From assembly GCF_046119375.1 (NCBI RefSeq), contig NW_027362896.1:248001-312000 (forward strand): 64,000 bases of DNA, given 5' to 3'. A program made the position numbers and the translations under genes. This document shows, one piece after another, positions 13,323 to 35,619 of this stretch. The notes beneath the pieces are model-generated. The model was not told the DNA's origin. It saw nothing but the letters and a program-made list of their open reading frames with translations, and made no database searches. The stretch is from Phyllobates terribilis (taxonomy: Eukaryota). Numbering within the stretch: position 1 is the first letter of the stretch; each line of letters opens with the position of its first letter.

Positions 13323-13413
13323 CTGGGTGGTCATATGTAGGAATCTCCTCTTTACACCGCTCATCACCTCTCACATATGTCTCTGTAGTATTAATATGGG
13401 TCAGATCTTCACC
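13323..13413 (-). CDS. KRAB-ZNF gene 1 exon 5 (GEDLTHINTTETYVRGDERCKEEIPTYDHP)
   Basis: TTTCAG acceptor, CAG|GTGAGT donor, 91 nt, phase 0 to 1. Confidence 0.88.
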
Positions 13414-13611
13414 CTGAAACAAATATGATAAAAGTCACAGACAGATGGAGAAGTCCCATCTATGATCAGCTCTAATCCTGCCATCTCCACCGTTCTCATT
13501 ACACAAGTAGAAAACATATAATACTGGTGGATAAAACAAGACTGAGCACAAGACCTTCACAGCCGTCTACACATCATAGGGGAGATCTCATGACACCTTC
13601 TCTCCATCTAC

Positions 13612-13709
13612 CTGATGATCCTGAGGAACATTGGGGTCTTCTTGTTTACAGTCCTGTGGAAGAAGAGGACGGGGACATCTCTCTGGTGTTGTCCTCTTAC
13701 TGGATAGAT
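13612..13709 (-). CDS. KRAB-ZNF gene 1 exon 4 (DLSSKRTTPERCPRPLLPQDCKQEDPNVPQDHQ)
   Basis: CCTCCAG acceptor, CAG|GTAGAT donor, 98 nt, phase 1 to 0. Confidence 0.88.
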
Positions 13710-13792
13710 CTGGAGGAAACACATACAGGGACTGAATTCATTCTTTACATACAGATAATTATAGGCCGTGTGTATTTAGTCCTGTCTATTAC

Positions 13793-13916
13793 CTGGTGAT
13801 GTGAGGGGCTGGGGAACCTCCATCATGACGTCCTTGTACAGATCTTTGTGTCCTTCTAAATACTCCCACTCCTCCATGGAGAAATAGACGGCGACATCCT
13901 GACACCTTATAGGAAC
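13793..13916 (-). CDS. KRAB-ZNF gene 1 exon 3, KRAB-A box
   Basis: [41 protein letters not shown], with canonical AG/GT boundaries, 124 nt. Confidence 0.92.
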
Positions 13917-13999
13917 CTGACACACACAATGATACCATCATCCCCCCGATCCCTTCATAGCGTTACTGTATAATGTCCCAGCATTCCCAGCAGTGTCAC

Positions 14000-14179
14000 C
14001 TCTCCAGTCAGCAGCTCAATCATCTTGTAGGTGAGTTCTAGGATCTTCTGGTCATTGATGTCCTCATGTATCAGGGGGTGAGGTGGGGGCCTCGTGATTG
14101 GGCTGAGGGGTCTTCCCCATCCCTCAGACACAGGGTCCTGACAGCGCTCACTAGAGGTCTTCTTCACTACTGTGTAATC
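14000..14179 (-). CDS. KRAB-ZNF gene 1 exon 2 (FAX-like N-terminal module of frog oocyte ZNFs)
   Basis: DYTVVKKTSSERCQ...NDQKILELTYKMIELLTGE, 180 nt, AG/GT boundaries. Confidence 0.88.
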
Positions 14180-14308
14180 CTGGTTATGGAGAGACACATT
14201 AATAAATCTCCCTCCAGACATTTCCAGAGTCCTCACCTCTCCAGTTCTGTCCATCTGTTATTCCCATAGATAAGAATGATGTAATGTGACGTCATCAGAA
14301 TCTCTCAC

Positions 14309-14389
14309 CTCTCCAGTAAGCCGGAAGAGGATCTCTAGGGTGAGGTGGAATATCCTCTCCGCCATCTTCTTCTTCTTGTCCTTCTCCAT
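14309..14389 (-). CDS. KRAB-ZNF gene 1 first coding exon (MEKDKKKKMAERIFHLTLEILFRLTGE)
   Basis: ATG at 14389, GAG|GTGAGA donor, homologous to gene 2 exon 1. The start codon choice is inferred. Confidence 0.75.
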
Positions 14390-14459
14390 CCACTAAGGTT
14401 TAAGGTAAATTTTCTAGAAGATGGAAGATAATGATGAGAACGACTGAATCTACAGGATC

Positions 14460-14644
14460 CTAAATGGAAGGAAGATGGCTGCTCTGTGCGCCCAGGAGCT
14501 GTGATGAGGTCACAGGAGGGGAGGAGTCAGGGGTCACATGATCAGGGGCCTCAGTGGATGCAGGACTCTGCTGTGCTGGTTGTCATGGTGCTGGATGAGC
14601 TGAAGTTTATGTGTGGGGTCAGGAGGGGTTTACAGTGTGGATGT
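14460..14644 (-). promoter_or_regulatory. Putative promoter/5' region of gene 1, conserved at gene 2 (about 34515-34683)
   Basis: Conserved block between the VNTR and the first exon in both paralogs, containing TCATGTGAC (E-box-like) and TGACCTCA motifs. The TSS was not determined. Confidence 0.4.
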
Positions 14645-15727
14645 AGCGGAGCCGCGTGTGTACGAGGTGTACGGAGCGGAGCCGCGTGTGTACGAGGTGT
14701 ACGGAGCGGAGCCGCGTGTGTACGAGGTGTACGGAGCAGAGCCGCGTGTGTACGAGGTGTACGGAGCGGAGCCGCGTGTACGAGGTGTACGGAGCAGAGC
14801 CATGTGTGTACGAGGTGTACGGAGCAGAGCCGCGTGTGTAAGAGGTGTACGGAGCGGAGCCAGGCGTGTACGAGGTGTACGGAGCGGAGCCGCGCGTGTA
14901 CGAGGTGTACGGAGCGGAGCCGCGCGTGTACGAGGTGTACGGAGCGGAGCCGCGCGTGTACGAGGTGTACGGAGCGGAGCCGCGCGTGTACGAGGTGTAC
15001 GGAGCGGAGCCGCGCGTGTACGAGGTGTACGGAGCGGAGCCGCGCGTGTACGAGGTGTACGGAGCGGAGCCGCGCGTGTACGAGGTGTACGGAGCGGAGC
15101 CGCGCGTGTACGAGGTGTACGGAGCGGAGCCGCGCGTGTACGAGGTGTACGGAGCGGAGCCGCGCGTGTACGGAGCGGAGCCGCGCGTGTACGGAGCGGA
15201 GCCGCGCGTGTACGAGGTGTACGGAGCGGAGCCGCGCGTGTACGAGGTGTACGGAGCGGAGCCGCGCGTGTACGAGGTGTACGGAGCGGAGCCGCGCGTG
15301 TACGAGGTGTACGGAGCGGAGCCGCGCGTGTACGAGGTGTACGGAGCGGAGCCGCGCGTGTACGAGGTGTACGGAGCGGAGCCGCGCGTGTACGAGGTGT
15401 ACGGAGCGGAGCCGCGCGTGTACGGAGCGGAGCCGCGCGTGTATGAGGTGTACGGAGCGGAGCCGCGCGTGTACGAGGTGTACGGAGCGGAGCCGCGCGT
15501 GTACGAGGTGTACGGAGCGGAGCCGCGCGTGTACGAGGTGTACGGAGCGGAGCCGCGCGTGTACGAGGTGTACGGAGCGGAGCCGCGCGTGTACGAGGTG
15601 TACGGAGCGGAGCCGCGCGTGTACGAGGTGTACGGAGCGGAGCCTCGCGTGTACGAGGTGTACGGAGCGGAGCCGCGTGTGTACGAGGTGTACGGAGCGG
15701 AACCGCGTGTGTACGAGGCGTACGGAG
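14645..15727. repeat. 30-bp CpG-rich VNTR (GGAGCGGAGCCGCGCGTGTACGAGGTGTAC)n upstream of gene 1
   Basis: Lines 14881-15120 are perfect 30-bp periodic copies. Occasional 21-bp units occur. There are 6 CpG per unit. Confidence 0.97.
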
Positions 15728-15981
15728 AGGAGTATCCCGATTTATCTATCTGCACCCTCTGAATAGAGCGAGTTCTGGTCACTAAGACGAATGATGATGG
15801 GAGTGTACGTGCATGAAGGAAGCTGTCAGTTTCTATGCACCTTCACTTACCTCACTATGGCTGTATACATGTTTGTATGTATTTCAGCCATTAACTCCTT
15901 GTTCGGTCTAAGATGATGTAAGGTGGCTTTCGGACACATAGTTGATGGGAATTATGTATCACAGAGGTGGTTGTCCTAGAC

Positions 15982-17424
15982 CAGGGGTCTCAAACTCAGC
16001 TGGGTATAAGGGCCGCACACGGAAAAACATTTAATTTGGGGGGCCGCATTGTTTGCATGACAAAGTGACATTTTTAGTGATACCATTTTATTTTCTATAC
16101 ACCTTTTGAACTGGTCCTCATCTTGCAGACATGGTCTCCCCTCCAGGTCCCCCATATTGCAGACATGGTCTCCCCTCCAGCTCCCCCATATTGCAGACAT
16201 GGTCTCCCATGCAGGTCCCCCATATTGCAGACATGGTCTCCCATCAAGGTCCCCCATATTGCAGACATGGTCTCCCATCCAGGTCCTCCATATTGCAGAC
16301 ATGGTCTCCCATCCAGGTCCTCCATATTGCAGACATGGTCCCACATATTGCCGACATGGTCCCCCATTCAGATCCCCCATATTGCAGACATGGCCTTCAT
16401 ATTGCAGACATGGTCCCCATATTGCAGACATGGTCCCCCATATTGCAGACATGGCCTTCATATTGCAGACATGGTCCCCATATTGCCGACATGGTCCCCC
16501 ATCCAGGTCCCCCAATATTGCAGACATGGTCACCCATCCAAGTCCCCCATATTGCAGACATGGTTCCCCATATTGCAGACATGGTCCCCCATCCTGGTCC
16601 TTATGTTGCAGACATGTCCCCCATCCAGGTACCCATGTTGCAGACATGTCCCCCATCCAGGTGTCCCCCTATACTGCGCACAGGGCCGCCCCCCCATACT
16701 GCGCACAGGGTCCCCGCCCCCTCCCCCATACAGCGCTCAGGGTCCCAGCCCACCCCATACAGCGCTCAGGATCCCCCCCCCCATACAGCGCTCAGGGTCC
16801 CACCCCATATAGCGCTCATGGTCCCCGTCCCCATCCCCCCATACTGCGCTCAGGGTCCCCCCCCCATACTGTGCTCATGGTCCCCGTCCCCCCATACTGC
16901 ACTCAGGGTCACCGCCCCCCCATACTGCGCTCAGGGTCCCCGTCCCCCCATACTGCGCATGGTGCCCCCCCCCCTATACTGAGCACAGGTCCCCTGTGCT
17001 GTATCTCGCATGACAGAGAAAAAACTAAAAAAAGATTCTCACCTGTCCTCCGTTCCCTCGGCGTCCTTTCTGCACCTGTGGCCGCAGGCACAGACCCCGT
17101 AACGATCGCGGCTTTCTCCAGCAGCCGCCGATATCAGCGCTGTAGTGCAGTGTATTGCCGCGCGGAGGCCAGCAGCTGACATCTGCCCATGTCAGTGACG
17201 TCATACGCCGCCGCGCTGGGACGCAGATGTCAGCTGCTGGCCTCTGATAGGCTGGCACTGATATTGCTGTGCACAGAGCCGGTCTCTGCACGGCCATATA
17301 CTGCACTACAGCGCTGATATCGGCGGCTGCTGGAGAGAGCCGCAATCATTACGGAGTCTATTTGCCTGCGGGCCGCAAGAAGCAGCCGGAGGGGCCACAT
17401 TTGGCCGCGTGTTTGAGACCCCTG
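15982..17424. mobile_element. Non-autonomous hAT element with internal minisatellites and hairpin (copy A)
   Basis: TIR CAGGGGTCTCAAAC...GTTTGAGACCCCTG and 8-bp TSD TCCTAGAC (15974-15981 and 17425-17432). Confidence 0.93.
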
Positions 17425-20157: not shown

Positions 20158-21198
20158 CAGATCTACCTCTCTGTACTCGATATCAACTCCTTACTAACCA
20201 GAATACCACAATGTCTGTCTGCTATTTCATCTTTCTTCTCTGCTAGATTCCTAAAACTTAATATGGATAAAACCAAATTCATCATATTTCCACCATCTCA
20301 CTCAACCCCCCTCCTGACCTATCTATCAAAGTCAATGGCCACCCACTCTCCCCAGTCTCGCAAGCTCGCTGCCTCTGGGTAACCCTTGACTCTAATTTCT
20401 CCTTCAAACCTCATATCCAAGGCCTTTCCACTTCATGCTGACTCCAATTCAAAAATATTTCCCGGATCCGCACATTCCTCAACCATGAATCTGCAAAAAC
20501 ACTAGTGCGTGCCCTCATCATCTCTCTCCTCGACTACTGCAACCTCCTGCTCTGTGGTCTCTCTTCTAACTCTCTCGCACCCCGGCAATCTATCCTAAAC
20601 TCTGCTGCCCGACTAATGCACCTGTCCCCCCGCTATTCTCCTGTCTCTTCCCGCTGCCAATCCCTGCACTGGCTCCCCATTGCCCAGAGACTCAAGTTCA
20701 AGACCCTAACCTTGGCATACAAAACCATCCATAGCCTATCTCCTCCATATATCTATGACCTAGTCTCCCGGTACCTACTTGCATGCAACCTCCGATCCTC
20801 ACAGGACCACCTTCACTACTCTGCTCCTTTCTCCTCTTCCCACAATTGCATACAAGATTTCTCCCATGCATCCCCCCTACTCTGGAACTCTCTACTCCAA
20901 CACGTCAGACTCTCGCCTACCGTGGAAACCTTCAAAAGGAACCTGAAGACCGACCTCTTCCGACAAGCCTACAACCTGCAGTAACCCTCACTGCATGACC
21001 AGCTGTACCCTCACCTACGGTATCCTCACCCACCCCTTCTACACTGTGAGCCCTCACGGGCAGGGTCCTCTCGCCTCCTGTGCCAGTCGGTGACTTGTTT
21101 TTGTTTAAACTATTGTACTTGTTGTCTGCTATGTATACCCCTTTTTCACATGTAAAGCGCCATGGAATTAATGGCACTATATTAATTAATAATAATAA
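20158..21198 (+). mobile_element. L2-clade LINE 3' fragment (copy A)
   Basis: RT C-terminus (QIYLS; LIISLLDYCN..NSAARL..LHWLP..LKTDLFRQAY) ending in an (AAT)n tail. Splits the Gmr1 integrase at VNYKVH|QPG. Confidence 0.9.
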
Positions 21199-21678
21199 CC
21201 AGGAAGACTAAAACTGTACCAAGTGTACGTAGGTGGCAAGATAGGGAGCCAGTTGAAACTCCGTGTTTTCTGGACAAGCCTGAAACAGATGTTGAAAGAG
21301 TCATAATAGCAAAGATGCCATTGAAGGCTCAAAAATAGCAGTGCGGGAGTTGTTGCAGCAGAACAGGGACCTGTTCTTAGATTTGCTTTTTTGTACAAAG
21401 GTCATAGAACATGAGGTTCTGATTTAATCCCATGTGCGGGTGAACTTGAAGCCCTATCTAATTCCTGAGGCCTGGCGAGAGCTATTCTCCAAGGAATCTC
21501 TGAGTCACTGAGGAATCAGAGAGGGTGGTCTAGCCCTATTGTCCTGGTTCCAAAACCTGATGGCGAATGGAGGTTCTGTAACGATTATAGGAAGCTGAAT
21601 GAAGTCCAAGTTCAACGCATATCAGATGCCGTGTGTCGATGACCTGATCGTGAGACGTGGGCTGGCAAGGTATACAAC

Positions 21679-23036
21679 TGTGTGACCCACTACTACTCAG
21701 GTAGCGTTAGCCCTCCCTGGGAAAGGTGTACTCGGACTGCGGGCCGGTGGCAGAGGGGGATGCAGTCGTGGCCTTGGCCCGGTCCGTGGCCAGGGAGCAC
21801 ACATTAAAAATATAGGGTAGTGGATGAGTGGTTATTTGTCTGCAACGCCTCCTGTGGTTTCTGCTGAGGACCACCAGCGCTGCGACAGTCCTCTGAGGCC
21901 GGTGTTCTAGCAGCTTGGGATGGAATAGCTCCCCGCAGGTGGAGCTAGGCCTCAGGGCAGAGTAGAAGTGCAGTGCAGAGGAATGGTGGGTGCGGTGCCG
22001 CGCAGAAATGAGAGAGAAGAGGCGATGTATGAAGTCATCCAGGTTTTACTCACGGTAGACTTGTTTTCAGCCACAAAGCATCTCTTTGTTCCTCACGGCG
22101 CGCTGCGGCCACCAGGATGGGGTTCAGCTCACTCCGGGTAGCTCGGGTGCACCAGACAAAACCCCAGCACCAGTGTGTTCCTCTCACTTGCTGTACTAGA
22201 ACCGCCTCGTGCCCCTACTAAGTCCCGTACGTGCACCGCAATGTCCGCTGAAGGTGGCTTGTAGCCCCCGGACCGCCTAGGTCCCTTATTGGTGACTGGG
22301 GTGTAAACGTGGCGTAATGCTGGGGTCCCTCTGGATAGACGCAGATTAAGGGGATACAGGTGACGACTCTGCTCCATCCGTATTCCCCCTGGGATCCACT
22401 TCAGCCTCCGGACTTTTCTGACAGAGACCTGGAGTACAAAGTCAGATAATCGGGGACCGGTACCCCCTCTTGCGGCAGGAGTCTCTCTGGCGGGGCCAGA
22501 ATAAGGGTAGCAGGTGGCGACTCCGCTCCGTCCACATCCCCTGAGATCCTTTCGCCTGTGGAGCTCTTCTCCTCTGCTCCCCTCCTAGGCCTTCTGGTGT
22601 GAACTAAGACATAGGACACAGCCAGCTGTAACTCAACTCTGCCCCAGCCCCCAATCTCAAGGCCTGAGACCGGGAATAGCAGCATCTTGAGGCAGCTGCA
22701 GCTTGTACTAACTGTCACCTCCAGGGAACTGCGACAAAAGACCCGGTATTAAAGATGGCATCCATATTTATATGGATGTATTAGTGTAACCGTAAAGTGC
22801 TTCCTCCACCCTACTCACTACAAGGTTCCCCCTACTTTTGGTTCCCCCCTTACTCCTCCATTCAGGACCGGGGCAGCACATTGTGCTCTAAACCCCCTTC
22901 AGAATGGGAGTGTGTAGTGTTGGATGTGTGGTGGGGTCCTGTGTGGTGCTCCATCCTTACCTCGGAGAGGAGATACCACACCTCGTTCCATGAAGTGCAG
23001 TACCCCTGTGGCGACTGAACTCTCAGGGGCGCCACA
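21679..23036 (-). mobile_element. Long solo LTR-like element (same family as 8053-9234), copy A
   Basis: TG..CA ends, splitting RT at ARYI|TTLDL. The 4-bp TSD is TAAC (perfect in copy B, CAAC/TAAC here). Confidence 0.85.
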
Positions 23037-26000
23037 TAACCACCTTGGATTTAACTAAGAAATATTGGCAAATCCCCATGTCACAAGAAGCCAAGAAGAA
23101 GACTGCCTTCTCTATGCCCGACGGATGTTTCCAATATGTCCCGATGCTGTTTGGTCTGCAGGGAGCCCTGGCCACCTTCCAGAGTGCCATGGACTGGATC
23201 CTCGCAATCCGTAAGAATTACACTGCATCATACTTTATATATCGTAATCTTCAGCCCAGATTGGAGATGTCACCTGCAAAAGGTCCAGGCGGCGTTTGAT
23301 CCTCTCAGGAAGGCAGGGTTTTCTATAAATCTGAAAACATTTTGCCATGGGAAATAAAGAGGCCAAATAACTAGGATATGTAGTAGGTAGAGGCGAGATC
23401 AAACCCCAGATCAGTAAAGTAGATGCAATCCAAAACTGGCCAAGACCACTCTTAAAGAAGCAAGTTAGAGCCTTTCTGAAAATGAAAATAACGGACAGTG
23501 AGTCATGTAATGTGTGGTCTCTAAGTAAAGGTAATGTGACGGGAGCTAGTTACCCCATCCGCAGATGTCCAATCTTCTTCTGCCGGCCCCTGACATGGAA
23601 AGGCTTTTCTTACACTGGGATATATAAAATATGACTATCGCACTGTGTCTCCAAGATGAACTAAAACTTTTATTCTTACAAGCAGGTTTTATAGAGAATC
23701 ACACAGGCTATTTTTTAGCACCCATTGTTCTCACCAGATAATACCCACAGTAGGCTCCCAGACAGCAGTTATGCAACAACCCATTAATCAGCACATTGTC
23801 TGTTGGCCCCTGCTAAGTGAGCACAGGAAGGTGGGGGTCAGGAGTGCTTCGGTCACATCACAGCATGTCCAACAATATGCGATCCACAATATTCACCCCA
23901 CTTTGTAACATTATGTCCCATTAGCTGCATAGGCGCTACGACAACCCCCATGTGGCAAAATCTTGGAGTACGGGGTTGATCCGTCACAATCCTCCCCCTT
24001 CTCGGACATGATCGGCCTACCCAGTCTGCTCCCCGACGGATCAGCTGGAGGAGGTCCACGATTTATGAGGTTGGTAGCAGGTCAGTTTGTCGGCTTAGTC
24101 CATCGGCGTTACCATTTTGCTTGCCGGGTCTATAGTGGATGGTGAAGTCTAACGGTTGTAGCGCCAAACTCCACCGTAGTAGTCTGGCATTGTCCCCGGA
24201 GACCCGATTAAGCCATACCAGGGGGTTATGATCCGTTATGAGGGAATACTATCTTCCATACAAATATATTTACAAATACTACTGCCAGGCATTCCTTTTC
24301 GATGGCCACATAGCTGACTTCTCGAGGCAGTAATTTCCGACTCAGATAAGCTATTGGGTGTTCTTGGCCGTCCGGCCCAACTTGGCTCAGTACTGCCCCT
24401 AACCCAAACATAGATGCGTCCGTGTGAACAAGGAAACATTTAGTTGGATCGGGTGCGGCCAATATCGGGGTATTTGTGAGAGCGTCCTTTAGCTGGCGGA
24501 AGGCTTCCTCACACTCGGGGGTCCAAGTTAACTGGCGGGGGAGGTTCTTACGTGTCAGATCAGTGAGGGGCTTGGCAATGCTGCTGTAATTAGGGACAAA
24601 TTTCCTATAATACCCTGCTGTCCCTAGAAAGGCCATGACTTGGGTTTTAGCATGTGGGGTGGGCCACTTGGCTATGGCCTCAATCTTGGCGGGTTCCGGT
24701 CGTTGTTTTCCACCCCCCACCCAATGTCCTAAATACTGCACCTCTGCTTTGCCTACGTGACACTTGTTGGGATTCAGGGTGAGTCCGGCTTTGTGGATCC
24801 TATCCAATACTGTCTCTAGATGATTTAGATGCTCATCCCATGTCGCGCTGTAGACGGCGATGTCATTCAGGTAGGCACAAGCATAGTCCTGGAGACCATC
24901 CAGAAGCCGGTCAGCCAGCCTCTGGAAGGTCGCGGGGGCATTCTTCATCCCAAATGGCATAACCCAAAACTGGAATAAGCCAAACGGGGTGACAAATGCA
25001 GACTTGGGAATAGCATCAGGACTTAGGGGAATCTGCCAATAGCCTTTGCATAGATCGATGGTGGTCAAATACTTTGTCCCAGCCAGCCGGTCTAACAACT
25101 CGTCCACACGCGGCATGGGATACGCATCTGTCACAGTTTTCTCATTTAGCTTGCGATAGTCTACCCAAAACCGGGTAGTCCCATCTTTCTTAGGCACTAA
25201 CACTACAGGGGACACCCAGGGACTATCTGACTCCTCAATGACCCCTAAACGCAACATCTCCTGTATCTCTTGTCGCATCCCTTCTCGTACAGACTCCGGG
25301 ACGCGGAAGGGGGGTTGTCTCAGGGGGGTCTGATCTTGTGTCTCAACCTTGTGTTGTGCAAGTCGGGTGAACCCCGGTCTCTCTGAGAACATCCTCTGAC
25401 GCTGCCTCAGCAATGTCTCGGCCTGCTCTCTCTCCCGGGTCCCTAGGTTTTCTCCTAAGTGTACCTGGTCCCAGGTTTTCGACTGAGTCCTCTCACCTAA
25501 GACATCAGGTAAGGGGAGTTCGGCTAAATCCTCTGCTTCGGGTGCGCAGATGGAAGCTACCTCTTCAGGGCGCTCCCGGTAGGGCTTCAGCATATTCACG
25601 TGGAACATGCGGATAACCCTGGGGTCGTCACAATCGGCGACATTGAAGGTGGTGTCGGCTATTTTCCCCACTACCCGGTAAGGCCCCTGCCATGCGGCCT
25701 GGAATTTGTTCTGCCTAACTGGTTCTAGTACCAGGACCTTCTGTCCTATCTCGAAGGTGCGTTCTCTAGTCCTCTGATCGTACCATACGCGCTGGAGCCG
25801 TTGGGCCGCCTGCATGTTCACGCACACAGCCTGAGTCAACTCCTGCAGGCGGTCCCGGAGTTCCAGCACGAAGGGCACGATAGGGGTTCCTGCTATGGTT
25901 TCCTCCCCTTCCCAGAGTTCTCGTACTAAGTCTAGGGGCCCCCTCACCCGCCTCCCATATAACAGTTCAAATGGGGAGAACCCCGTAGATTCTTGGGGCA

Positions 26001-26697
26001 CCTCCCGATAGGCGAACAGGAGGTGCGGCAAGAATTTCTCCCAGTCCCTGTAGGTCCGGGTGAACGTCCCAATGAGTTGTTTTAACATTCCGTTAAAGCG
26101 CTCACACAACCCATTGGTTTGCGGGTGGTATGGGGCGCTTCTAATGGACTTTACACCACACAGTCTCCACAGTTGGCTGGTCACCTCTGCCGTAAATTGG
26201 GTGCCCTGGTCCGAGATAATCTCCCGGGGAAATCTAACCCGTGAGAAAACCTGGAGCAGAGCAGCCCCCACCGTCTCTGCCAGTATGTTAGGTAAGGCAA
26301 CCGCCTCTGGATACCGCGTGGTGTAATCTATCACTGTCAATATATACCTTTTCCCTGATGGACTGGGTTTGGCTAACGGCCCTATCAGATCGACCGCTAC
26401 TCGGCTAAATGGCTCCTCCACAATGGGAAGGGGGTGTAATTTGGCCTTGCAGCGATCTCCCCTCTTGCCAATGCGCTGGCAACTGTCACAGGTCTGGCAG
26501 TACTGACGAACATCATGGAATAACCCTGGCCAAAAGAAGTTTTGTGTCAGATGATGCCTGGTGGGGCTGACTCCGAGGTGCCCCGCCAAGGGTATGTCAT
26601 GAGAGATTCGCAGCAACTCCTGCCTATACTTTTTGGGAACTACCAGCTGTCGTTTTACAGTGGGGCTCGTCCCTGAGTGAGTTTGCCCGGTAACCCT

Positions 26698-27138
26698 AGC
26701 AAAAAAGAAGCAAGACAAAAATATATCTCATACCCTACCATAATTATATATAAATGTAAAGCAAAGTTGCATAATAAATATAGGGTACTTAGTGAACTAT
26801 TTTTGATCAAAAAAAGTATACAAGCCGTCCCACCAGCGGCAAGGTGACCCTAAATTGGGACGGTACCTATACTGCCTATATTAAAAACCTTACTGTATAT
26901 CAAAGTTGAAGTAATGCATATAAAAGGGTAGACAAATAGGACCGGGTCCCAACTTTTTTTGATCAAAAATAGTTCACTAAGTACCCTATATTTATTATGC
27001 AACTTTGCTTTACATTTATATATAATTATGGTAGGGTATGAGATATATTTTTGTCTTGCTTCTTTTTTGCTAGTGTGAACATGCCTCTGTTTCTTGTATG
27101 TCTGCCATCTTAGACCTCAGTTCACATTGTCTGGTTTT
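26698..27138. mobile_element. 441-bp fold-back insertion with 16-bp TSD, tentatively Penelope-like terminal sequence
   Basis: Absent from copy B. TSD TTTGCCCGGTAACCCT at 26682-26697 and 27139-27154. Perfect 122-bp inverted arms at 26696-26817 and 26952-27073, 134-bp spacer and 65-bp one-sided tail. The family assignment comes from architecture and recall only. Confidence 0.6.
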
Positions 27139-28617
27139 TTTGCCCGGTAACCCTGTAGAGGAGTCCCTGATGCCATATAAACTGTTCACCTTCCAGTACC
27201 CCTCTTCCCTCCTGTGCCTTCCCGCGATACCCCTGCAATGAGGGATCCTCTAGTACCTCCTTCCTAAATTCTGCTGGGGTGTCCCATGAAATGTGTCTGG
27301 CTATGGGAATACGAGAAGAGCTGTAGTGTCTTACCTGGGCCTCCTCCGAGTGTGATTCCGCCTCCGCAGCTCGAGCTTGTCTCCGGGTAGTGACAGGATA
27401 TGTTTCAGCCATAGCCACCGATGCCGGGTCGGCTTCGTCTTGGTAGCAGTGTACAGCGGCCCGGTTGAAGGTAGTCGTTTCCGGTTTTGGCCACTGGGTG
27501 CGCTGGGTCCGGTTGGGACAGTGTCTCTGCAGGTGACCCAGTTGATGGCAGGTGTGGCATCGCACCCCAGGAGGACTCTGGTAGGCCGGGGTATTGGTGG
27601 GTCCCCCGCCAAGCTTCTGTGGTTTAGGGGCCTCCAGACCCATGGGAGGGCCCCTTGAGACAGTTTTGGACCCTGACAATTGGGCCCTCCTGGCATCATA
27701 ATGTTCATCGGTCAGTCCCGAAGCCATTCTTGCGTCTCGGGAGTTAACCCAGTAAAAGAATCGTTCTAACATGATGAGCTGTAGGACGTCCTCCTTCGTG
27801 TCTGCTTTGCTACCTTGTACCCACTGTAAGCGTGACTGCCATAGTTTACAGGCCCATTCAGCGTGGGTATCCGTTTCCCGTTTTGTGGTTTTGCGGAACT
27901 TTTGACGGTATGCCTCTGGTGTTAGAGCATACCGGGCCAAGATCACTTCTTTGACTCGCTTATAGTCCATACAGTCCTGATCCGATACAGTGCGATAGGC
28001 ATCCGCTGCCCGGCCTGTCAGCTTGTTGGCCAGAATCTGGACCCAATCCTCCGGCTCCACTTTATGAAGTGTACACTGCCGCTCAAAGTCCTGCAGAAAG
28101 CCATCAATGTCTTCCTCTGCCTCCCCCAACTGTCGGAAGGCATTGTATTGGATCATTTTGTGGCTTACCCCTGCTGGTACCGGGGAGGAAGCCAGGGCTT
28201 CCCCAGCTCGCTGTATCTCCTGTCTCCGCTCCGCCATCTCCATCTTGGCTAGCTCTATCTTGGTCCGCTCTGCCATCTCCATCCTGGCTAGCTCCATCCG
28301 CTCTGTCCTCTCCATCTCCATCTTTTTATCCAGATCAGTACGCACATCAGCCATCACCTTATCTATGATCTGTACTGCCGGGTTGGGAGCATAAAGTGCC
28401 AGTCTGCTCTTTACCTCCCTCTGGAATTCAGTCTCTTCCACGTTCCCGTTGGAGGTTGTTGCATTGTCGAGCTCCATAATGGCTGCTATCAAATCCGCTT
28501 TTGTTTTGTTGCTGGCGGTTAACCCTCGAGCTTCCACAAGGTTCTTCAAAGTATTCCTCTTTAGCTTCCGGTAGATATCTTCCATTCAGTCCTTGGTTCC
28601 TGAAGAAGATGGACCGC

Positions 28618-28635
28618 ATCCCACCGCTGCCACCA
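28618..28635 (-). promoter_or_regulatory. Primer-binding site complementary to the tRNA-Leu 3' end
   Basis: TGGTGGCAGCGGTGGGAT lies 1 nt inside the 5' LTR and is the reverse complement of the vertebrate tRNA-Leu(AAG) 3' end ATCCCACCGCTGCCA+CCA. Confidence 0.9.
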
Positions 28636-29398
28636 GTGTGACGGGAGCTAGTTACCCCATCCGCAGATGTCCAATCTTCTTCTGCCGGCCCCGGACATGG
28701 AAAGGCTTTTCTTACACTGGGATATATAAAATATGACTATCGCACTGTGTCTCCAAGATGAACTAAAACTTTTATTCTTACAAGCAGGTTTTATAGAGAA
28801 TCACACAGGCTATATTTAGCACCCATTGTTCTCACCAGATAATACCCACAGTAGGCTCCCAGACAGCAGTTAGGCAACAACCCATTAATCAGCACATTGT
28901 CTGTTTGCCACTGCTAAGTGAGCACAGGAAGGTGGGGGCCAGGAGTGCTTTGGTCACATCACAAAATGTCCAACAATATGTGATCCACAATATTCACCCC
29001 ACTTTGTAACATTATGTCCCATTAGCTGCATAGGCGCTACGACAACCCCCATGTGGCAAAATCTTGGAGTACGGGGTTGATCCGTCACAGGTAAATTTGC
29101 AATAAAAAAGATGGCATCACTTGCTAACTTCTGCGATCAACCAGTGAGGAGTTATCGCAGAAAATTAGAGATTTAATAAAACCAAGAAGGGCGGAGACCA
29201 GCCCACGTGAGGTCATCACAGGGGAGTGTGTGGGCAGTGCCCCTGTCGGCATAAAAGATCAGGCCGAATATTGATCTATACTCATGCCGGGTTATACATA
29301 TTTGTGTAAGCGGGGGTCCTGTTCCATAACGGTTCGTTTGACTGCTTCCCTCCAGCTAAACTGAATCGTCTCTGCGATCGGCCTAGTAAGTCCTTATA

Positions 29399-30438
29399 TT
29401 AATCCCTTTTTATTTTGTGTAACTGTATATGCTGTATTAAACATGAACCCTGCGTGAAACATTTCCCACATTCTGGACATGAATATAGCTTTTCTCCAGT
29501 GTGAATTCTTTGATGTTTTTGAAGATCTGGTTTCCGGATAAAACATTTCCCACATTCTGAACATGAATATGGCTTCTCTCCTGTGTGAATTCTGTAATGT
29601 TTATGAAGATCTGGTTTCTGGATAAAACATTTCCCACATTCTGAACATGAATATGGCTTTTCTCCAGTGTGAATTCTTTGATGTTTTTGAAGATCTGGTT
29701 TCCGGATAAAACATTTCCCACATTCTGAACATGAATATGGCTTCTCTCCTGTGTGAATTCTTTGATGTTTATGAAGATCTGATTTCTGGATAAAACATTT
29801 CCCACATTCTGAACATGAATATGGCTTCTCTCCTGTATGACTTCTGTAATGTTTAAGCAAATTTGACTTATTGCTGAAACATTTCGCACATTCTGAACAT
29901 GAAAATGGCTTTTCTCCTGTGTGACTTCTTTGATGCATAAGCAATTTAGATTTATGTTCAAAACATTTCCCACATTCTGGACATGAATATGCCTTCTCTC
30001 CTGTGTGAATTCTTTGATGTTTATGAAGATCTGATTTCTGGATAAAACATTTCCCACATTCTGAACATGAATATGCCTTCTCTCCTGTGTGAAATTTTTC
30101 ATGTTTATGAAGATCTGGTTTCTGGATAAAACATTTCCCACATTCTGAACATGAATATGGCTTCTCTCCTGTGTGAAATCTTTGATGTTTAAGCAATTTA
30201 TATTTAGTTTTAAAACATTTCCCACATTCTGAACAGGAAAATGGTTTCTTCCCTGTGGGAATTATTTGATGTTCGACATCCCTTCTCTGGCTTTCATTTT
30301 GCTTAACAGTCTGTGATGAATCCAAGTAGATGACGGATTGAAAAGGCTCAGATGATTGATTTTTGCTCTGAAGGGCTGGAGGTATAGCTGGAATAATGGC
30401 ACGCTTTTCATGGGTATCTGGTTTGACACCACAGTCAT
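29399..30438 (-). CDS. KRAB-ZNF gene 2, last exon: 10 C2H2 fingers
   Basis: Acceptor TATTCTTGGCAG ends at 30439, phase 1, TAA at 29399-29401. The joined CDS is 1611 nt, or 536 aa plus stop. Confidence 0.93.
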
Positions 30439-30858
30439 CTGCCAAGAATAAATCTGATTTTATTATTTTTTTATATCAATTCCTTATATTTTATAACATT
30501 TCTCTATACATACATACAGGCAGAAACGTTTCAGGCAATAAAAGGAGGATTAAAAATAAGCTTTATTACATTACAATCTACAGCAACAGATAAAAATACA
30601 CGCCATAAAAACATGTAAGATGGGGTATTCACATCTCCGAGAAACTATACCAATATGTAGGAGGTGTAATAAAAATAAGATTAGCAAATATCTCCAATTA
30701 GAAATGTAGTATAGTTCTTCTGATTCGCTATGTCACTTACCCCATGTTCAGGGCATTGCAAGTTAGTTGCTAGTGGTCATAACTATGGATACCTAAGCTA
30801 CTGCAATGCTCTGCACATGGGGTAAGTGACAAAGAATCAGGAGAACTATACCACATTT

Positions 30859-31361
30859 CTAATTGGAGTCTGAATAAACCTCGACCTCACACATCGACAG
30901 GTACTCCGAGGGTCATGGGATCACCATGCTGACGTAGCGACCCTCCATCCCCTTACAGCAGAAGGACAAGGTGGCAGAGACCACATTCGTGACTGTGCCG
31001 CGTACTGGAATGTTATTGTCGGGGGAGTTCCCGATTCGGACCTCGGCCCCCATCAGTCGCTCAGGGCAACAGTCCATCCTGTTGGTTATGGCGACGCTGG
31101 ATGTCTTGTAGCTCTTGCCCAGGTCCAGCTTCCACCAGGGATCCTTCTCCAGGTTGGTGTGGGTGCAGAAGTCACTATTGAAGTCGGTGTCTTTGTTCCC
31201 ATCAATGGCGTTCTTAGCCAATATGCTCCTGGTGGCATACGGATAGTCCGACACCTGGGAGGTCACTCCGGTCCTTGCTATGTTTGTGGTCCATGTGCAG
31301 GAGCAAATCCCAGAGCCAGAACCACAGATCCCAGTAGAATCAGAGAAGATACAAGATTCAT
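30859..31361 (-). pseudogene. F-type lectin (fucolectin) pseudogene, sense to the ZNF host, copy A
   Basis: Signal peptide MNLVSSLILLGSVVLALGFAPA followed by an FTLD with the H-x26-R-x-D-x4-R fucose-binding motif. Lesions: a 1-nt deletion after the signal peptide and TGA at 30913-30915. Confidence 0.9.
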
Positions 31362-31483
31362 CCTGCAGGAGATGTAAGTGAAGGTCCTGTGTAATCTCCA
31401 CATCTGATAAATGCTGGTTCCCTGGTAATCAGTGACTATTCCCTGCAGTCTGTACTCACAGGAGCAGCTCCTGCACAATCTGG

Positions 31484-31943
31484 ATGAATCTTGTATCTTC
31501 TCTGATTCTACTGGGATCTGTGGTTCTGGCTCTGGGATTTGCTCCTGCACCTGGACCACAAACATAGCAAGGACCGGAGTGGCCTCCCAGGTGTCGGACT
31601 ATCCGTATGCCACCAGGAGCATATTGGCTAAGAACGCCATCGATGAGAACAAAGACACCGACTTCAATAGTGACTTCTGCACCCACACCAACCTGGAGAA
31701 GGATCCCTGGTGGAAGCTGGACCTGGGCAAGAGCTACAAGACATCCAGCGTCGCCATAACCAACAGGATGGACTGTTGCCCTGAGCCACTCATGGGGGCC
31801 GAGGTCCGAATTGGCAACTCCCCCGACAATAACATTCCAGTGTGCGGCACAGTCACGAATGTTATCTCTGCCACCTTGTGCTTCTGCTGTAAGGGGATGG
31901 AGGTCGGTACGTCAGCGTGGTGATCCCAGGACACTCGGAGTAC
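31484..31943 (+). pseudogene. F-type lectin inverted duplicate (antisense arm), 3'-truncated, copy A
   Basis: Reverse complement of 30901-31361, with frameshifts, R>P in the fucose motif (CCPEP), and an end at IPGHSEY. Confidence 0.9.
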
Positions 31944-32196
31944 ATTTCTAATTGGAGGTATTTTCTGTTATTATTATCACACCTACTATATTTTGGGATA
32001 GGATTTTGGAGATGGGAATACCCCTTCAAGGCTGTACGCTTAGGACTTATCCAGGACTCATCCAGATGCCTCATTCCATTGTTTTTTTGTGATTACATTG
32101 ATCCCTCTTAAATGGCTTTTTGTATTTTTATGTGTTTTCAACTGCGATCTAATAAATTGTATTTTTAATCTCTATATTGTCTCACATTTCTCTGTA

Positions 32197-32321
32197 CACA
32201 GTCATGGTTGAAATAGTTGGCGCCCTTAAAATTGTTCCAGAAAATGAAGTATTTCTCCTAGGACATTATTGCAATTACACCTGTTTTGTTATAGACACGT
32301 TTATTTCCTTTGTGTGTATTG
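32197..32321 (+). mobile_element. Tc1-like left-end fragment (also 62664-62788)
   Basis: CAGTCATGGTTGAAATAGTTGGCGCCCTTAAAATTGTTCCAGAAAATGAAG resembles Tc1 TIR starts. Confidence 0.55.
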
Positions 32322-32825
32322 TCACTGATCTTTTCTAGTGAAATGTTCAATGGAGAATCAAAACTGGGCTTTGACCAGATTAATACCTGACCCTACTTCT
32401 CAACCCTTTCCTGATCTGCCTACATACTTCTTGTTGACCGCAGAACGGTTTGGCTTCTCACTTGACTGCCCTTCCGGGACATGTACTGCTGCTAGATATT
32501 GACCTTGGCTTCTCCAGCTTAGATGTCCACCTGCCTGACTTCTGTGTGTGACCCGGCTCTATTCTTGACATTCAGCTGTAATCTGGCAACTCACAACTAC
32601 ATTACAATTGGAGACATGGTGCCTTTCTGCAGCAAATAAAGCTCTGAGCATTAAAGATTTGCTGCCAAAACGCGTTAATCAAAAAAAGTGAAAAAAAAGC
32701 TTTTGTTTTATTACGCATCAAATCTATCTGCAAGTAAAATGCACGTCAATTACTTGTGTGATCAAACTCATAATATAATGACCACAGGATCTGTGACTTC
32801 TCTGCATTTAGTGGTCAGTACTCAC

Positions 32826-32916
32826 CTGGGTAGTCATATGTAGGAATCTCCTCTTTACACCGCTCATCACCCCTCACATATGTCTCTGTAGTATTAATAT
32901 GGGGCAGATCTTCACC
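32826..32916 (-). CDS. KRAB-ZNF gene 2 exon 5
   Basis: Paralog of 13323-13413, AG/GT intact, 91 nt. Confidence 0.88.
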
Positions 32917-33114
32917 CTGAAACAAATATTGTAAAAGTCACAGACAGATGGAGAAGTCACATCTATGATCAGCTCTAATCCTGCCATCTCCACCGTTCTC
33001 ATTACACAAGTATAAAACATATAATACTGGTGGATAAAACAAGACTGAGCACAAGACCTTCACAGCCGTCTACACATCATAGGGGAGATCTCATGACACC
33101 TTCTCTCCATCTAC

Positions 33115-33212
33115 CTGATGATCCTGAGGAACATTGGGATCTTCTTGTTTACAGTCCTGTGGAAGAAGAGGACGGGGACATCTCTCTGGTGTTGTCCTCT
33201 TACTGGATAGAT
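33115..33212 (-). CDS. KRAB-ZNF gene 2 exon 4
   Basis: Paralog of 13612-13709, 98 nt. Confidence 0.88.
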
Positions 33213-33295
33213 CTGGAGGAAACACATACAGGGACTGAATTCATTCTTCACATACAGATAATTATAGGTCATGTGTATTTAGTCCTGTCTATTAC

Positions 33296-33419
33296 CTGGT
33301 GATGTGAGGGGCTGGGGAACCTCCATCATGACGTCCTTGTACAGATCTGTGTGTCCTTCTAAATATTCCCACTCCTCCATGGAGAAATAGACGGCGACAT
33401 CCTGACATCTTATAGGAAC
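33296..33419 (-). CDS. KRAB-ZNF gene 2 exon 3, KRAB-A box
   Basis: [37 protein letters not shown] intact. Confidence 0.92.
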
Positions 33420-33502
33420 CTGACACATACAATGATACCGTCATCCCCCCGATCCCTCCATAGCGTTACTGTATAATGTCCCAGCATTCCCAGCAGTGTC
33501 AC

Positions 33503-33682
33503 CTCTCCAGTCAGCAGCTCAATCATCTTGTAGGTGAGTTCTAGGATCTTCTGGTCATTGATGTCCTCATGTATCAGGGGGTGAGGTGGAGGTCCTGTGA
33601 TTGGGCTCAGGGGTCTTCCCCATCCCTCAGACACAGGGTCCTGACAGCGCCCACTAGAGGTCTTCTTCACTACTGTGTAATC
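33503..33682 (-). CDS. KRAB-ZNF gene 2 exon 2 (FAX-like)
   Basis: DYTVVKKTSSGRCQ...KMIELLTGE, 180 nt. Confidence 0.88.
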
Positions 33683-33811
33683 CTGGTTATGGAGAGACAC
33701 ATTAATAAATCTCCCTCCAGACATTTCCAGAGTCCTCACCTCTCCAGTTCTGTCCATCTGTTATTCCCATAGATAAGAATGATGTAATGTGACGTCATCA
33801 GAATCTCTCAC

Positions 33812-33889
33812 CTCTCCAGTAAGACGGAAGAGGATCTCTAGGGTGAGGTGGAATATCCTCTCCGCCATCTTCTCTCTGTCCATATCCAT
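33812..33889 (-). CDS. KRAB-ZNF gene 2 first coding segment (MDMDREKMAERIFHLTLEILFRLTGE)
   Basis: ATG at 33889. The exon acceptor is at 33953 and an in-frame TAG at 33911-33913 precedes the ATG. Confidence 0.8.
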
Positions 33890-34683
33890 CTTTGACAGGA
33901 AACTTCTCTTCTATAGAAGATATTCACTGAGAGGATCCGATATTGTAGAGACCTGAATGAGAAGAAGATGAGAAGATGTAACGTCATCAATAATTCTATG
34001 TAATAATACAATCACTGATTCTGGTATAAAGCAGTAATCTGTGGATCTGATCCTGGATGATGCCGGAAGAAGAAGTGGATTTTTATGGCGGCCATTAATG
34101 AGCTTCGCTCTGAGGACCAGAGGAGGTTCGGCCTGAACGCTGCACTCGTGGTGTGAACACAGACATATTAAAAGTAAAAGGTAGATAGTTCCTAACTGCC
34201 TTCCTTAATGTCTGCCGGAACAGAGCGGTCACGGACTGCTCCTGCTGGTGACTCTGCGGCTCCTGATGAGTCACGTAGACGGAGCAGCGGCTTCTCTTTG
34301 GCTCTGCTTTCTTGATGGGACGTGACTGACGACATCACACTGATTGTCAGCAGCCTCCCTGCGAGCAGCCAGATGTCAATCAGAGGGATGATTTATTTCA
34401 CCATGCAAGAAAAGCAGACACAAAATAGACGCACAGTGTGAATAACGGCTAATCCTGATAGAGAGTAATGGAGACTCCACATACCTCCACCTGCAGAGCC
34501 GCCACCACATATATGGCTGCTCTGTGCACACAGGACCTGTGATGAGGTCACAGGAGGGGAGGAGTCAGGGGTCACATGATCAGGGGCCTTAGTGGGTGCA
34601 GGACTCTGCTGTGCTGGTTGTCATGGTGCTGGATGAGCTGAAGTTTATGTGTGGGGTCAGGAGGGGTTTACAGTGTGGATGTA

Positions 34684-35600
34684 GCAGAGCCGCGTGTGTA
34701 CGAGGTGTACGGAGCAGAGCCGCGTGTGTACGAGGTGTACGGAGCAGAGCCGCGTGTGTACGAGGTGTAAGGAGCAGAGCCGCGTGTGTACGAGGTGTAC
34801 GGAGCAGAGCCGCGTGTGTACGAGGTGTACGGAGCAGAGCCGCGCGTGTACGAGGTGTACGGAGCAGAGCCGTGTGTGTACGAGGTGTACGGAGCAGAGC
34901 CGCGTGTGTACGAGGTGTACGGAGCAGAGCCGCGTGTGTACGAGGTGTAAGGAGCAGAGCCGCGTGTGTACGAGGTGTACGGAGCAGAGCCGTGTGTGTA
35001 CGAGGTGTAAGGAGCAGAGCCGCGTCTGTACGAGGTGTAAAGAGCAGAGCCGCGCGTGTACGAGGTGTAATGAGCAGAGCCGCGCGTGTACGAGGTGTAA
35101 TGAGCAGAGCCGCGTGTACGAGGTGTAAAGAGCAGAGCCGCGTGTACGAGGTGTAAAGAGCAGAGCCGCGCGTGTACGAGGTGTAATGAGCAGAGCAGCG
35201 TGTACGAGGTGTACGGAGCAGAGTCGCGCGTGTACGAGGTGTAAGGAGCAGAGCCGCGCGTGTACGAGGTGTAAAGAGCAGAGCCGCGCGTGTACGAGGT
35301 GTAATGAGCAGAGCCGCGTGTACGAGGTGTAAGGAGCAGAGCCGCGCGTGTACGAGGTGTAAGGAGCAGAGCCGCGCGTATACGAGGTGTAAAGAGCAGA
35401 GCCGCGCGTGTACGAGGTGTAAAGAGCAGAGCCGCGTGTACGAGGTGTAAAGAGCAGAGCCGCGCGTGTACGAGGTGTAATGAGCAGAGCCGTGTGTGTA
35501 CGAGGTGTACGGAGCGGAGCCGCGCGTGTACGAGGTGTACGGAGCGGAGCCGTGTGTGTACGAGGTGTACGGAGCGGAGCCGTGTCTGTACAAGGTGTAA
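34684..35600. repeat. 30-bp CpG-rich VNTR upstream of gene 2 (GGAGCAGAGCCGCGYGTGTACGAGGTGTAM variants)
   Basis: Paralog of the 14645-15727 array, more heterogeneous, with 28-30-bp units. Confidence 0.95.
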
Positions 35601-35619
35601 GGAGAGCAGCTTTGAGTTG

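Follow-up and report, generated by a model that had tools for sequence, protein, structure and literature searches.

Insertions of Penelope-like elements (PLEs) have been described as carrying a 5'-truncated copy placed head to head, a one-sided tail of 30-40 bp and target duplications of variable length (PMC8557442, PMC3846280), an architecture credited to Evgen'ev & Arkhipova 2005 and Arkhipova 2006 in the account of Craig et al. 2021 (PMC8557442). Intron retention and trans action on genes of the host are likewise on record for PLEs (PMC8557442, PMC3846280, PMC11167929), and a purified PLE protein cuts and extends both DNA strands, starting at two internal positions on the RNA whose spacing corresponds to the tail (Frangieh et al. 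2024, PMC11167929). In vitro, this enzyme depends on a motif of its own RNA to which it binds, favours AT-rich (ATT) targets and uses a start site that is non-homologous to the cut DNA; the AT-rich/ATT preference has been reported for two PLE enzymes only, namely PAc and the endonuclease domain from D. virilis (PMC11167929). Another system of relevance is the twin priming of L1 (Ostertag & Kazazian 2001, as presented by Kojima 2010, PMC2912911).

Here, these systems are compared with two fold-back insertions located in a zinc-finger gene cluster of Phyllobates terribilis, both of them within the window, i.e. the whole 64-kb stretch of DNA that was analyzed. One is an AT-rich insert of 441 bp and the other a cassette derived from a host lectin. 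A preliminary description of the locus had assigned one architecture to these two unrelated cargos, and the measurements agree with this (arm, spacer and tail of 122, 134 and 65 nt vs 463, 118 and 32 nt). The geometry of insertion is already known; it is the cargo that is unusual.

Structure of the two inserts

The 441-bp insert (26698-27138) has a cargo of 321 nt of non-coding sequence and is bracketed by two exact copies of the 16-mer TTTGCCCGGTAACCCT, which occurs a third time in the paralogous copy B of the locus (Table 1); the match count expected under a dinucleotide shuffle was 0.05. Copies A and B agree at 98.8% in alignment to the left of the site (20389-26697 vs 51319-57621) and at 99.4% to the right (27139-33532 vs 57606-64000), and the excess of copy A at the site is exactly 441 bp plus one additional 16-mer. 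No difference was found in the 58-62 bp compared on each side of the insertion site, and only one mismatch in the surrounding 600 bp. The exactness of the duplication and the foreign, AT-rich nature of the sequence spoke against an assembly artefact, which was rejected.

The last two nucleotides of the left duplication (CT, 26696-26697) extend the left arm, which gives a perfect inverted repeat of 122 nt (26696-26817 and 26952-27073; 122/122 complementary, self-BLAST match of 100%), 120 nt of which lie within the insert. Such identical arms are as expected if one template gave rise to both at insertion. Complementarity is absent at both arm/spacer junctions (an a/a mismatch), and four of the five bases at 27072-27076 are the same as those with which the left duplication ends. 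The tail terminates in TTTT and adjoins the TTT at the start of the duplication. This terminal U-run had suggested a Pol III transcript, a candidate that was rejected because runs of 5-7 T in the arm of the same sense would terminate Pol III.

The insert is situated in a Gmr1/Gmr30-like Ty3/gypsy LTR retrotransposon with 454-bp LTRs of 97.6% mutual identity and the Pfam domain order SCAN, integrase, RT and RNase H. In copy A, the insert breaks the gag-pol ORF of this element into ORFs at 27122-28585 and 24226-26718, whereas the corresponding element of copy B (54459-59556) has an unbroken ORF of 1300 aa (55150-59052). Capture of the insert during reverse transcription of the LTR element was dismissed, because the element occupies the same place in A and B, yet the insert is present in A alone. 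As a clean and very young event, the insertion could serve as a marker scored as present or absent in populations.

The lectin cassette (30869-31941) displays the same layout and is flanked by the 16-mer ACATTTCTAATTGGAG; the surrounding sequence is the right arm of a palindromic repeat of greater age. When the cassette and a single 16-mer were deleted in silico, this arm could be aligned to the reverse-complemented left arm with no gap where the insertion had been, while a 14-nt gap is required there when both 16-mers are retained; ACATTTCTAATTGGAG is a true target duplication. Together with the empty site in copy B, this gap-free alignment upholds the earlier claim that both inserts are real insertions with a 16-bp target duplication. 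The lectin cassette of copy B stems from segmental duplication and not from a second event.

In a tblastn search with P0003, a Phyllobates terribilis fucolectin, arm and tail of the cassette matched residues 26-166 without a break, and a signal peptide was found immediately upstream of the arm coding sequence. Both arms (463 nt, 96.1% identity) are collinear with residues 1-24 and 26-166 of P0003 and have a 1-nt frameshift in common. The tail-side junction, GA/CTCC (the slash marking the junction), encodes Asp-Ser, as in the parent-type protein, and both start sites fall within the coding region. Because arm and tail form one uninterrupted coding stretch, the tail can be read as template that was left uncopied by the other arm. 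The proposal of an unspliced lectin template is thus right in part at most, and a retained 5' intron could be accommodated in the 118-nt spacer only. The arms may run a further 11 nt (10/11; 31364-31374 vs 31465-31475) beyond a 6-nt indel, leaving a loop of ~90 nt. An 8-nt complement at the spacer ends was considered as junction microhomology and discarded, being 6 nt out of register; it is more simply a continuation of the arms past the 6-nt indel. The public gene model P0001 runs across the lectin hairpin and into the target duplication.

The two events differ in age, as the arms of the 441-bp insert are 100% identical vs 96.1% (3.9% diverged) for those of the lectin cassette.

Table 1. Positions of the two inserts, their target duplications and their surroundings in the window.
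Feature	Position	Strand	Remarks
Host of the 441-bp insert, Gmr1/Gmr30-like Ty3/gypsy LTR retrotransposon	23535-29089	-	LTRs, ORFs, Pfam order
Left 16-bp target-site duplication, 441-bp insert	26682-26697	+	Exact repeat; single at empty site of copy B
Left arm, without tail	26698-26817	+	120/120 complementary to 26952-27071; 25% GC
Spacer (loop)	26818-26951	+	134 nt
Right arm, continuous with tail	26952-27073	+	Inverted-repeat match
One-sided tail	27074-27138	+	65 nt; no left-arm partner
Right 16-bp target-site duplication, 441-bp insert	27139-27154	+	Exact repeat
Left 16-bp target duplication, lectin cassette	30853-30868	+	Repeat; virtual empty site from host palindrome
One-sided tail, lectin cassette	30869-30900	-	32 nt; next lectin coding stretch (LSMCEVEVYS-)
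Lectin arm with tail	30901-31363	- (sense)	F5/8 type C / F-type lectin fold; tblastn
Lectin spacer	31364-31481	.	118 nt
Lectin arm without tail	31482-31943	+	Last 2 nt (AC) overlap right duplication
Right 16-bp target duplication, lectin cassette	31942-31957	+	Repeat; virtual empty site
Empty site, paralogous copy B	57606-57621	+	16-mer single, flanks same as in copy A
Lectin cassette and duplications in copy B	61320-62425	+	99.5% identical to cassette of copy A; same 16-mers at 61320 and 62410

Junctions, target sites and searches for relatives

At the outer end of the tail-free arm, both inserts have two exact shared bases and 6/10 matches into the duplication, the latter with a binomial chance of about 0.02 per insert. 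The tail-side junction of the lectin cassette suggests 3-4 shared bases. Neither insert has a poly(A) tail, the ends in sense orientation being ...CTGGTTTT and ...TTATTCAGA. Cutting is deduced to have taken place at GGGCAAA/CTCAC and AACCCT/GTAGAG in the case of the 441-bp insert, whose target is GC-rich, and at TTGGAG/GTATTT and AAATGT/GGTATA in that of the lectin cassette. None of these sites matches TTTT/AA, and ATT is found at the cut sites of neither insert, leaving the AT-rich/ATT preference of the tested Penelope enzyme unmatched. The two target sites have no clear motif in common. Among the inverted repeats recovered by self-BLAST of the 64 kb, a non-exhaustive scan that missed at least two other listed pairs, these two independent events were the only ones with a flanking direct repeat of at least 9 bp.

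Searches for functional signatures in the 441-bp insert were negative throughout. Neither hammerheads nor other Rfam families were found in 26500-27300 at E <= 10 or in the whole window at gathering score, and hammerhead core motifs, canonical and A3:U8 (CUGANGA, AUGANUA), are absent from both strands of the insert. ARAGORN found no tRNA, and no ORF of at least 60 aa lies fully within the insert, nor does any pseudo-LTR or Penelope coding sequence. Among the scanned large ORFs of the window, Pfam revealed no RT/GIY-YIG domains except LTR-element RTs, and there was no LINE ORF. With no hammerhead, no ORF and no RT/GIY-YIG gene among these scanned ORFs, the suggestion that the 441-bp insert is the end of a Penelope-like element found no support. 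The missing hammerhead does not in itself exclude a PLE origin, because the Naiad and Chlamys PLEs also lack canonical ones (PMC8557442).

By BLAST against the window, the 441-bp insert gave no match beyond 16 nt, i.e. one copy in 64 kb, a count that says nothing about copy number genome-wide, the genome being far larger than this stretch. Scans of metagenomes and viral contigs with the insert, as well as word-based protein searches with insert ORFs spanning each arm/spacer junction, came out blank and are weak negatives. Furthermore, when tails and spacers were folded as RNA in either orientation, they did not outperform shuffled sequences, and the idea of the tail as a conserved start-site hairpin was consequently dropped.

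Possible routes of insertion

Several traits of the two inserts are those of PLE insertions, namely an inverted, 5'-truncated second copy placed head to head (the orientation of the lectin being given by its translation), an extension at one end only and a target duplication of fair length, for which an empty site exists in copy B or, virtually, in the host palindrome. The earlier comparison with Penelope architecture stands as far as this published plan is concerned, variable duplications included, and for the lectin tail, whose 32 nt lie within 30-40; the other tail, of 65 nt, lies outside that range. Unlike PLEs, the inserts are devoid of any PLE sequence (RT/GIY-YIG ORF, pseudo-LTR, hammerhead) and carry a host lectin mRNA and a 321-nt sequence as cargo. 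They also differ from the in vitro PLE reaction in having shared bases at the junctions and targets that are neither AT-rich nor ATT. The closest parallel among host genes is their movement by PLEs in Adineta vaga (Arkhipova et al. 2013, PMC3846280), where a member of an immune or multigene family was likewise copied to another site, a target duplication being present together with an empty-site partner, and where introns are tolerated. Here, unlike in Adineta vaga (PMC3846280), there are no pseudo-LTRs, the coding part is intron-free, the gene itself makes up the inverted arms and the host is a vertebrate.

RNA was probably copied from both ends of the cut. That target-primed reverse transcription on the two sides of a single staggered cut gave rise to both inserts is a reading to which we give even chances, and its attribution to a Penelope-like enzyme, made from the published properties of such enzymes, is tentative and falls somewhat short of that. 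In such a reaction a nuclease would nick the two DNA strands 16 bp apart, as the two true 16-bp duplications indicate, and each freed 3' end would pair by a few bases with an internal site on the same RNA species. The two priming sites would be 32 nt apart for the lectin and about 65 nt apart for the 441-bp insert, the stretch between them becoming the one-sided tail. The reading frame of the lectin cassette demonstrates, at the level of its sequence, that this tail is contiguous template, and the tail of the 441-bp insert may be so by analogy. Both cDNAs would then extend toward the 5' end of the RNA, one of them halting earlier, and the difference in length would give the spacer. The cDNA ends may be joined head to head through a template jump, which is consistent with the inversion junction of the 441-bp insert having no shared bases. 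The product would be arm, spacer, arm and tail within one duplication, and a transcript through it would fold up as a long hairpin. As to the enzyme, a resident Penelope-like RT/GIY-YIG protein, acting in trans on RNAs without its terminal repeats, would be the most likely one. The same plan would also follow from single priming with subsequent snap-back and end joining, provided that the spacer is part of the tailed arm.

A bolder version of this dual priming, which we regard as rather unlikely, is that a vertebrate Penelope-like RT/endonuclease works as a two-headed complex, takes arbitrary cellular RNAs lacking its own repeats or ribozyme, and uses a few shared bases to prime on them from the two nicked strands, thereby producing hairpin host-gene retrocopies in one step; it would have been active long ago (lectin) and again very recently (441-bp insert). 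Against dual priming in general stands that the RNA origin of the 441-bp insert is something that we infer. A Penelope enzyme in particular is opposed by the absence of a hammerhead, pseudo-LTR or Penelope coding sequence from this insert, by the non-ATT targets, GC-rich in the case of the 441-bp insert, by the shared bases at the junctions and by a 65-nt tail outside the range of 30-40. With two events to go by, the shared length of 16 bp is weak evidence, since the lengths of L1 duplications have their peak at 14-16 bp as well.

This latter peak (PMC2912911) is one of the points in favour of an unlikely alternative, i.e. twin priming of the LINE type, in which a LINE RT/endonuclease (L1-like or of another clade) nicks the target and the 3' end of the second strand anneals internally on the same RNA. 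The result would be a 5'-inverted retrocopy, with extensive overlap of the cDNAs as the inverted arms. In the account of Kojima 2010, as in the inserts, two target 3' ends are used on one RNA, bases are shared at the internal priming junction and an inverted 5' part is joined to a direct 3' part. Copies of L1 with a 5' inversion rely heavily on bases shared at the junction, 2-5 bp of them (PMC2912911), and both inserts have shared bases; tailless tRNA retrocopies with shared bases at the 3' junction are analyzed in the same source. Unlike L1 products, however, both inserts are without poly(A) and without a TTTT/AA site, and the first start is also internal, the lectin start sites both being situated in the coding region, away from the 3' end. 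The window, moreover, offers no LINE ORF among its scanned large ORFs, and with cDNA overlaps of 122 and 463 nt the product is a genuine hairpin, as opposed to a plain inversion. To our knowledge, the overlaps reported in twin priming are short, unlike these 122-463 nt.

It is distinctly unlikely that the 441-bp insert is a copy of a non-autonomous repeat of fixed structure, either foldback/MITE-like or a small retroposon using a Penelope-like or LINE enzyme in cis, with its likeness to the lectin cassette being a coincidence or merely due to a shared enzyme. Like foldback elements and MITEs, the insert is short, non-coding, AT-rich and hairpin-shaped, with long inverted arms and a flanking direct repeat, and thousands of copies would be compatible with what is seen in one 64-kb window of a far larger genome. 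Unlike in such elements, its right arm is parted from the duplication by the 65-nt unpaired tail, an extension beyond the inverted repeat that exists on one side alone and makes the termini asymmetric. Its arms are identical over 122/122 positions, a second copy is absent from the window, and the blank protein-word, metagenome and viral scans, albeit weak negatives, point the same way. We know of no eukaryotic TIR superfamily with 16-bp duplications, the known range being 2-11 bp, and DDE transposition remains disfavoured, as in the preliminary description, by the true 16-bp duplications and the asymmetric fold-back plan.

Lastly, repair at the DNA level, in which a staggered break is filled by polymerase theta or a polymerase of the microhomology-mediated break-induced replication type that copies stray DNA or cDNA, folds back and copies again with no retroelement endonuclease, is very improbable: the few bases shared at each outer junction and the blunt inversion junction do suit end-joining polymerases, and the template of the 441-bp insert may have been DNA, but polymerase theta is known for templated insertions that usually measure some tens of bases, duplications of exactly 16 bp in two independent events of very different age point to an enzyme with a fixed stagger, and the uninterrupted coding sequence of the lectin arms still needs an RNA step if the parent gene has introns there.

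Implications for inverted-repeat gene copies

Loci with inverted repeats can yield hairpin RNAs and small RNAs against the parent gene, and their origins are mostly unexplained. If one enzyme acting in trans explains the shared geometry of the two inserts, it would account concretely, and in one step, for how host genes come to exist as inverted-repeat copies. A practical point is that such cassettes get annotated as genes, e.g. P0001. The bolder version of dual priming, if true, would turn an mRNA directly into a potential double-stranded-RNA locus. One enzyme acting in trans on both cargos would also extend the trans-mobilisation by Penelope enzymes from rotifers, with their pseudo-LTR-framed genes, to a vertebrate host and to cargo devoid of sequence from the element.

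The 441-bp insert and its surroundings

By comparing copies A and B, the two paralogous units of a C2H2 zinc-finger gene cluster that lies in the window as a tandem segmental duplication, we found that copy A has exactly 457 extra bp at 26698-27154. These consist of the 441-bp insert and a duplicate of the 16-mer TTTGCCCGGTAACCCT, which is single in copy B (57606-57621). As displayed, the flanks beside the insertion point are identical, with one mismatch in the 600 bp around the site, and the two copies form a clean filled-site/empty-site pair. The preliminary description had given this insert a 16-bp target duplication, inverted arms of 122 bp, a 134-nt spacer and a 65-nt unpaired tail at one end, and these measurements are correct. 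The first two nt of the arms (CT) fall inside the left duplication, and the tail terminates in TTTT, abutting the TTT at the duplication start. In each arm, the innermost 22 nt (26796-26817 and 26952-26973) make up the near-palindrome ACTATTTTTGATCAAAAAAAGT, so that the arm/spacer boundary coincides exactly with the edge of a small hairpin. GC content is 25% in the arms, as against 54-55% in the flanks, and a transcript of the insert is predicted to fold as a perfect hairpin of 120 bp (-233 kcal/mol, z = -27). The insert contains no ORF of note, no tRNA and no Rfam family, a hammerhead core is absent from both of its strands, and nothing else in the 64-kb window is similar to it.

In copy A the insert interrupts the gag-pol ORF of an LTR retrotransposon, an ORF that copy B retains intact (1300 aa). 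Since the integrase precedes RT/RNase H and gag carries a SCAN domain, this host element is Gmr1/Gmr30-like; its 454-bp LTRs are ~97.5% identical. The two copies differ by another very young insertion, a chromovirus whose 422-bp LTRs are 99.8% identical.

In the cluster itself, 84-bp periodic arrays correspond to zinc fingers, and copies A and B are 98.8-99.4% identical across the last 13 kb. A ~1.1-kb stretch occurs three times (97-98% identical), which makes the duplication a tandem array of more than two copies, with units of ~19.5 and ~30.5 kb. Large GC-rich minisatellites (periods 30, 34, 28 and 17 bp) are also present; some recur across the duplicated units with no more than 86-89% identity, and they are far more diverged than the adjoining unique sequence. 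Both copies furthermore contain another inverted repeat, with 148-nt arms (93% complementary) and a 34-nt spacer; a scan of its copy A version found no flanking direct repeat of at least 9 bp.

Positions of the inserts, mobile elements and repeats in the window
Feature	Position	Remarks
Copy A	~15.7-33.5 kb	
Copy B	~41.7-64 kb	
441-bp insert	26698-27138	copy A
Arms of 441-bp insert	26696-26817; 26952-27073	122/122 complementary
LTR retrotransposon hosting 441-bp insert	23535-29089 (copy A); 54459-59556 (copy B)	Ty3/gypsy-like
Chromodomain Ty3/gypsy element (chromovirus)	46349-51321	copy B only, missing from copy A at ~20389-20397; two ORFs: gag-protease, RT-RNaseH-integrase-chromo
Lectin cassette	30869-31941 (copy A); 61320-62425 (copy B, with duplications)	
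Palindromic repeat hosting lectin cassette	30619-30868 + 31958-32027	~340 bp; inner inverted pair 30728-30760 / 30802-30834
Complementary ends of lectin spacer	31364-31374; 31465-31475	
Gene model P0001	30853-31957	
~1.1-kb stretch	13287-14390; 32789-33890; 63257-64000	
Minisatellites	14505-15780; 34680-35610; 16055-17000; 42048-42950; 11279-11980	
Further inverted repeat	43039-43368; 17089-17361	

The lectin cassette

The lectin cassette has the 16-mer ACATTTCTAATTGGAG on both sides, arms of 463 nt (96.1%), a 118-nt spacer and a 32-nt tail at the left. It is found in both copies (99.5% identical), and hence has no paralogous empty site. Its host sequence is an older palindromic repeat, possibly a MITE or an earlier fold-back insertion, whose arms are ~80% complementary; the cassette interrupts one of them. 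When the cassette is deleted together with one 16-mer, the alignment of this arm to its reverse-complemented partner passes ungapped through the old insertion point, whereas a 14-nt gap is required there when both 16-mers are retained; ACATTTCTAATTGGAG is thus a genuine target duplication.

Translation of the minus strand gives, across left arm and tail, uninterrupted residues 26-166 of a P. terribilis fucolectin (P0003); the signal peptide (residues 1-24) immediately precedes them, displaced by a 1-nt frameshift common to both arms. Consequently, the tail simply continues the template by 32 nt, one template species served for both arms, and the arms lack an intron. The template had previously been described as unspliced, which does not apply to the arms and can at most be true of the spacer. 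At the tail-side junction, GA|CTCC reads Asp-Ser as in the parent-type protein; judged from protein rather than parent DNA, this suggests three to four bases common to template and target.

The spacer ends share an 8-nt (10/11) complement, displaced by 6 nt from the register of the arms, which is probably arm sequence continuing past a later 6-nt indel and would reduce the loop to ~90 nt. Splice-donor-like and acceptor-like motifs occur in the spacer in either orientation. The public entry P0001, 'fucolectin-like [Phyllobates terribilis]', looks like a gene model spanning the hairpin, with an N-terminus antisense to the right-arm end and a C-terminus (..YSDSN stop) that is read across the boundary between tail and target duplication.

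Shared architecture and relative ages

The architecture proposed to be common to the two inserts was borne out, as both have a 16-bp duplication and are built as arm-spacer-arm-tail, the tail directly continuing its arm. Poly(A) is missing from both. Where the tail-less arm reaches the duplication, both show two exact shared bases and 6/10 matches into the duplication (chance ~0.02 each by binomial arithmetic). Among the inverted repeats recovered by self-BLAST, which missed at least two known pairs, a flanking direct repeat of at least 9 bp was found only at these two independent events.

The lectin arms are 3.9% diverged and the cassette is older than the A/B duplication; the 441-bp insert has identical arms and is missing from copy B. 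Read from such divergences, with ~2.4-2.6% between the LTRs used to date the Gmr30-like element, the lectin fold-back came first, followed by that element, the A/B duplication, and lastly the chromovirus and the 441-bp insert, these two unranked. That fold-backs arose at two widely separated times is more easily reconciled with a resident enzyme than with a chance event.

Candidate mechanism and enzyme

We consider it fairly probable that RNA was copied from both cut ends. Both 3' ends of one 16-bp staggered cut would then serve as cDNA primers at two neighbouring positions of the same RNA, so that the stretch between these positions would be copied once (the tail), the common stretch twice in opposite orientations (the arms), and the spacer by the cDNA reaching further toward the RNA 5' end. 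In the 441-bp insert, whose inversion junction has no shared bases (an a/a mismatch), the cDNA ends may have been joined by a template jump. One priming event with subsequent snap-back and end joining would also yield this plan, but only where the spacer is part of the tailed arm.

For copying from both ends, a Penelope-like enzyme is our tentative candidate, by analogy with known elements. Penelope-like elements have an adjoining inverted 5'-truncated copy, a one-sided 30-40-bp tail and target duplications, and they retain introns and mobilise host genes in trans (PMC8557442; PMC3846280). Cleavage and extension of both strands have been obtained with a purified anole element, which starts at two internal RNA sites whose separation equals the tail (PMC11167929). 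However, the anole enzyme needs a motif of its own RNA, favours AT-rich targets (ATT), and its start site has no homology to the cut DNA (PMC11167929), whereas one target here is GC-rich, there is no cut at ATT, and the junctions have shared bases. Together with the 65-nt tail of the 441-bp insert, longer than the Penelope range, and the lack of Penelope sequence in either insert and, by hammerhead search and among the large ORFs scanned, in the rest of the window, these points count against such an enzyme. The view of the 441-bp insert as a Penelope end is unsupported.

L1-type twin priming, with its 14-16-bp duplications and dependence on shared bases (PMC2912911), fits both inserts in these respects. 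Its poly(A) and TTTT/AA cut site are nevertheless both missing here, which makes it unlikely. It is also rather unlikely that the 441-bp insert is a copy of a fixed-structure repeat family, given its asymmetric termini, its perfect arms, a 16-bp duplication too long for TIR superfamilies (we know of none with one of this length) and, as weak negatives, the lack of a relative within the 64-kb window and blank metagenome, viral-contig and protein searches.

The insertion geometry of both inserts is already known. Their cargo is unusual, namely a host lectin mRNA and a 321-nt sequence, neither with element sequence, and the two inserts are a testable lead on the origin of hairpin copies of host genes.
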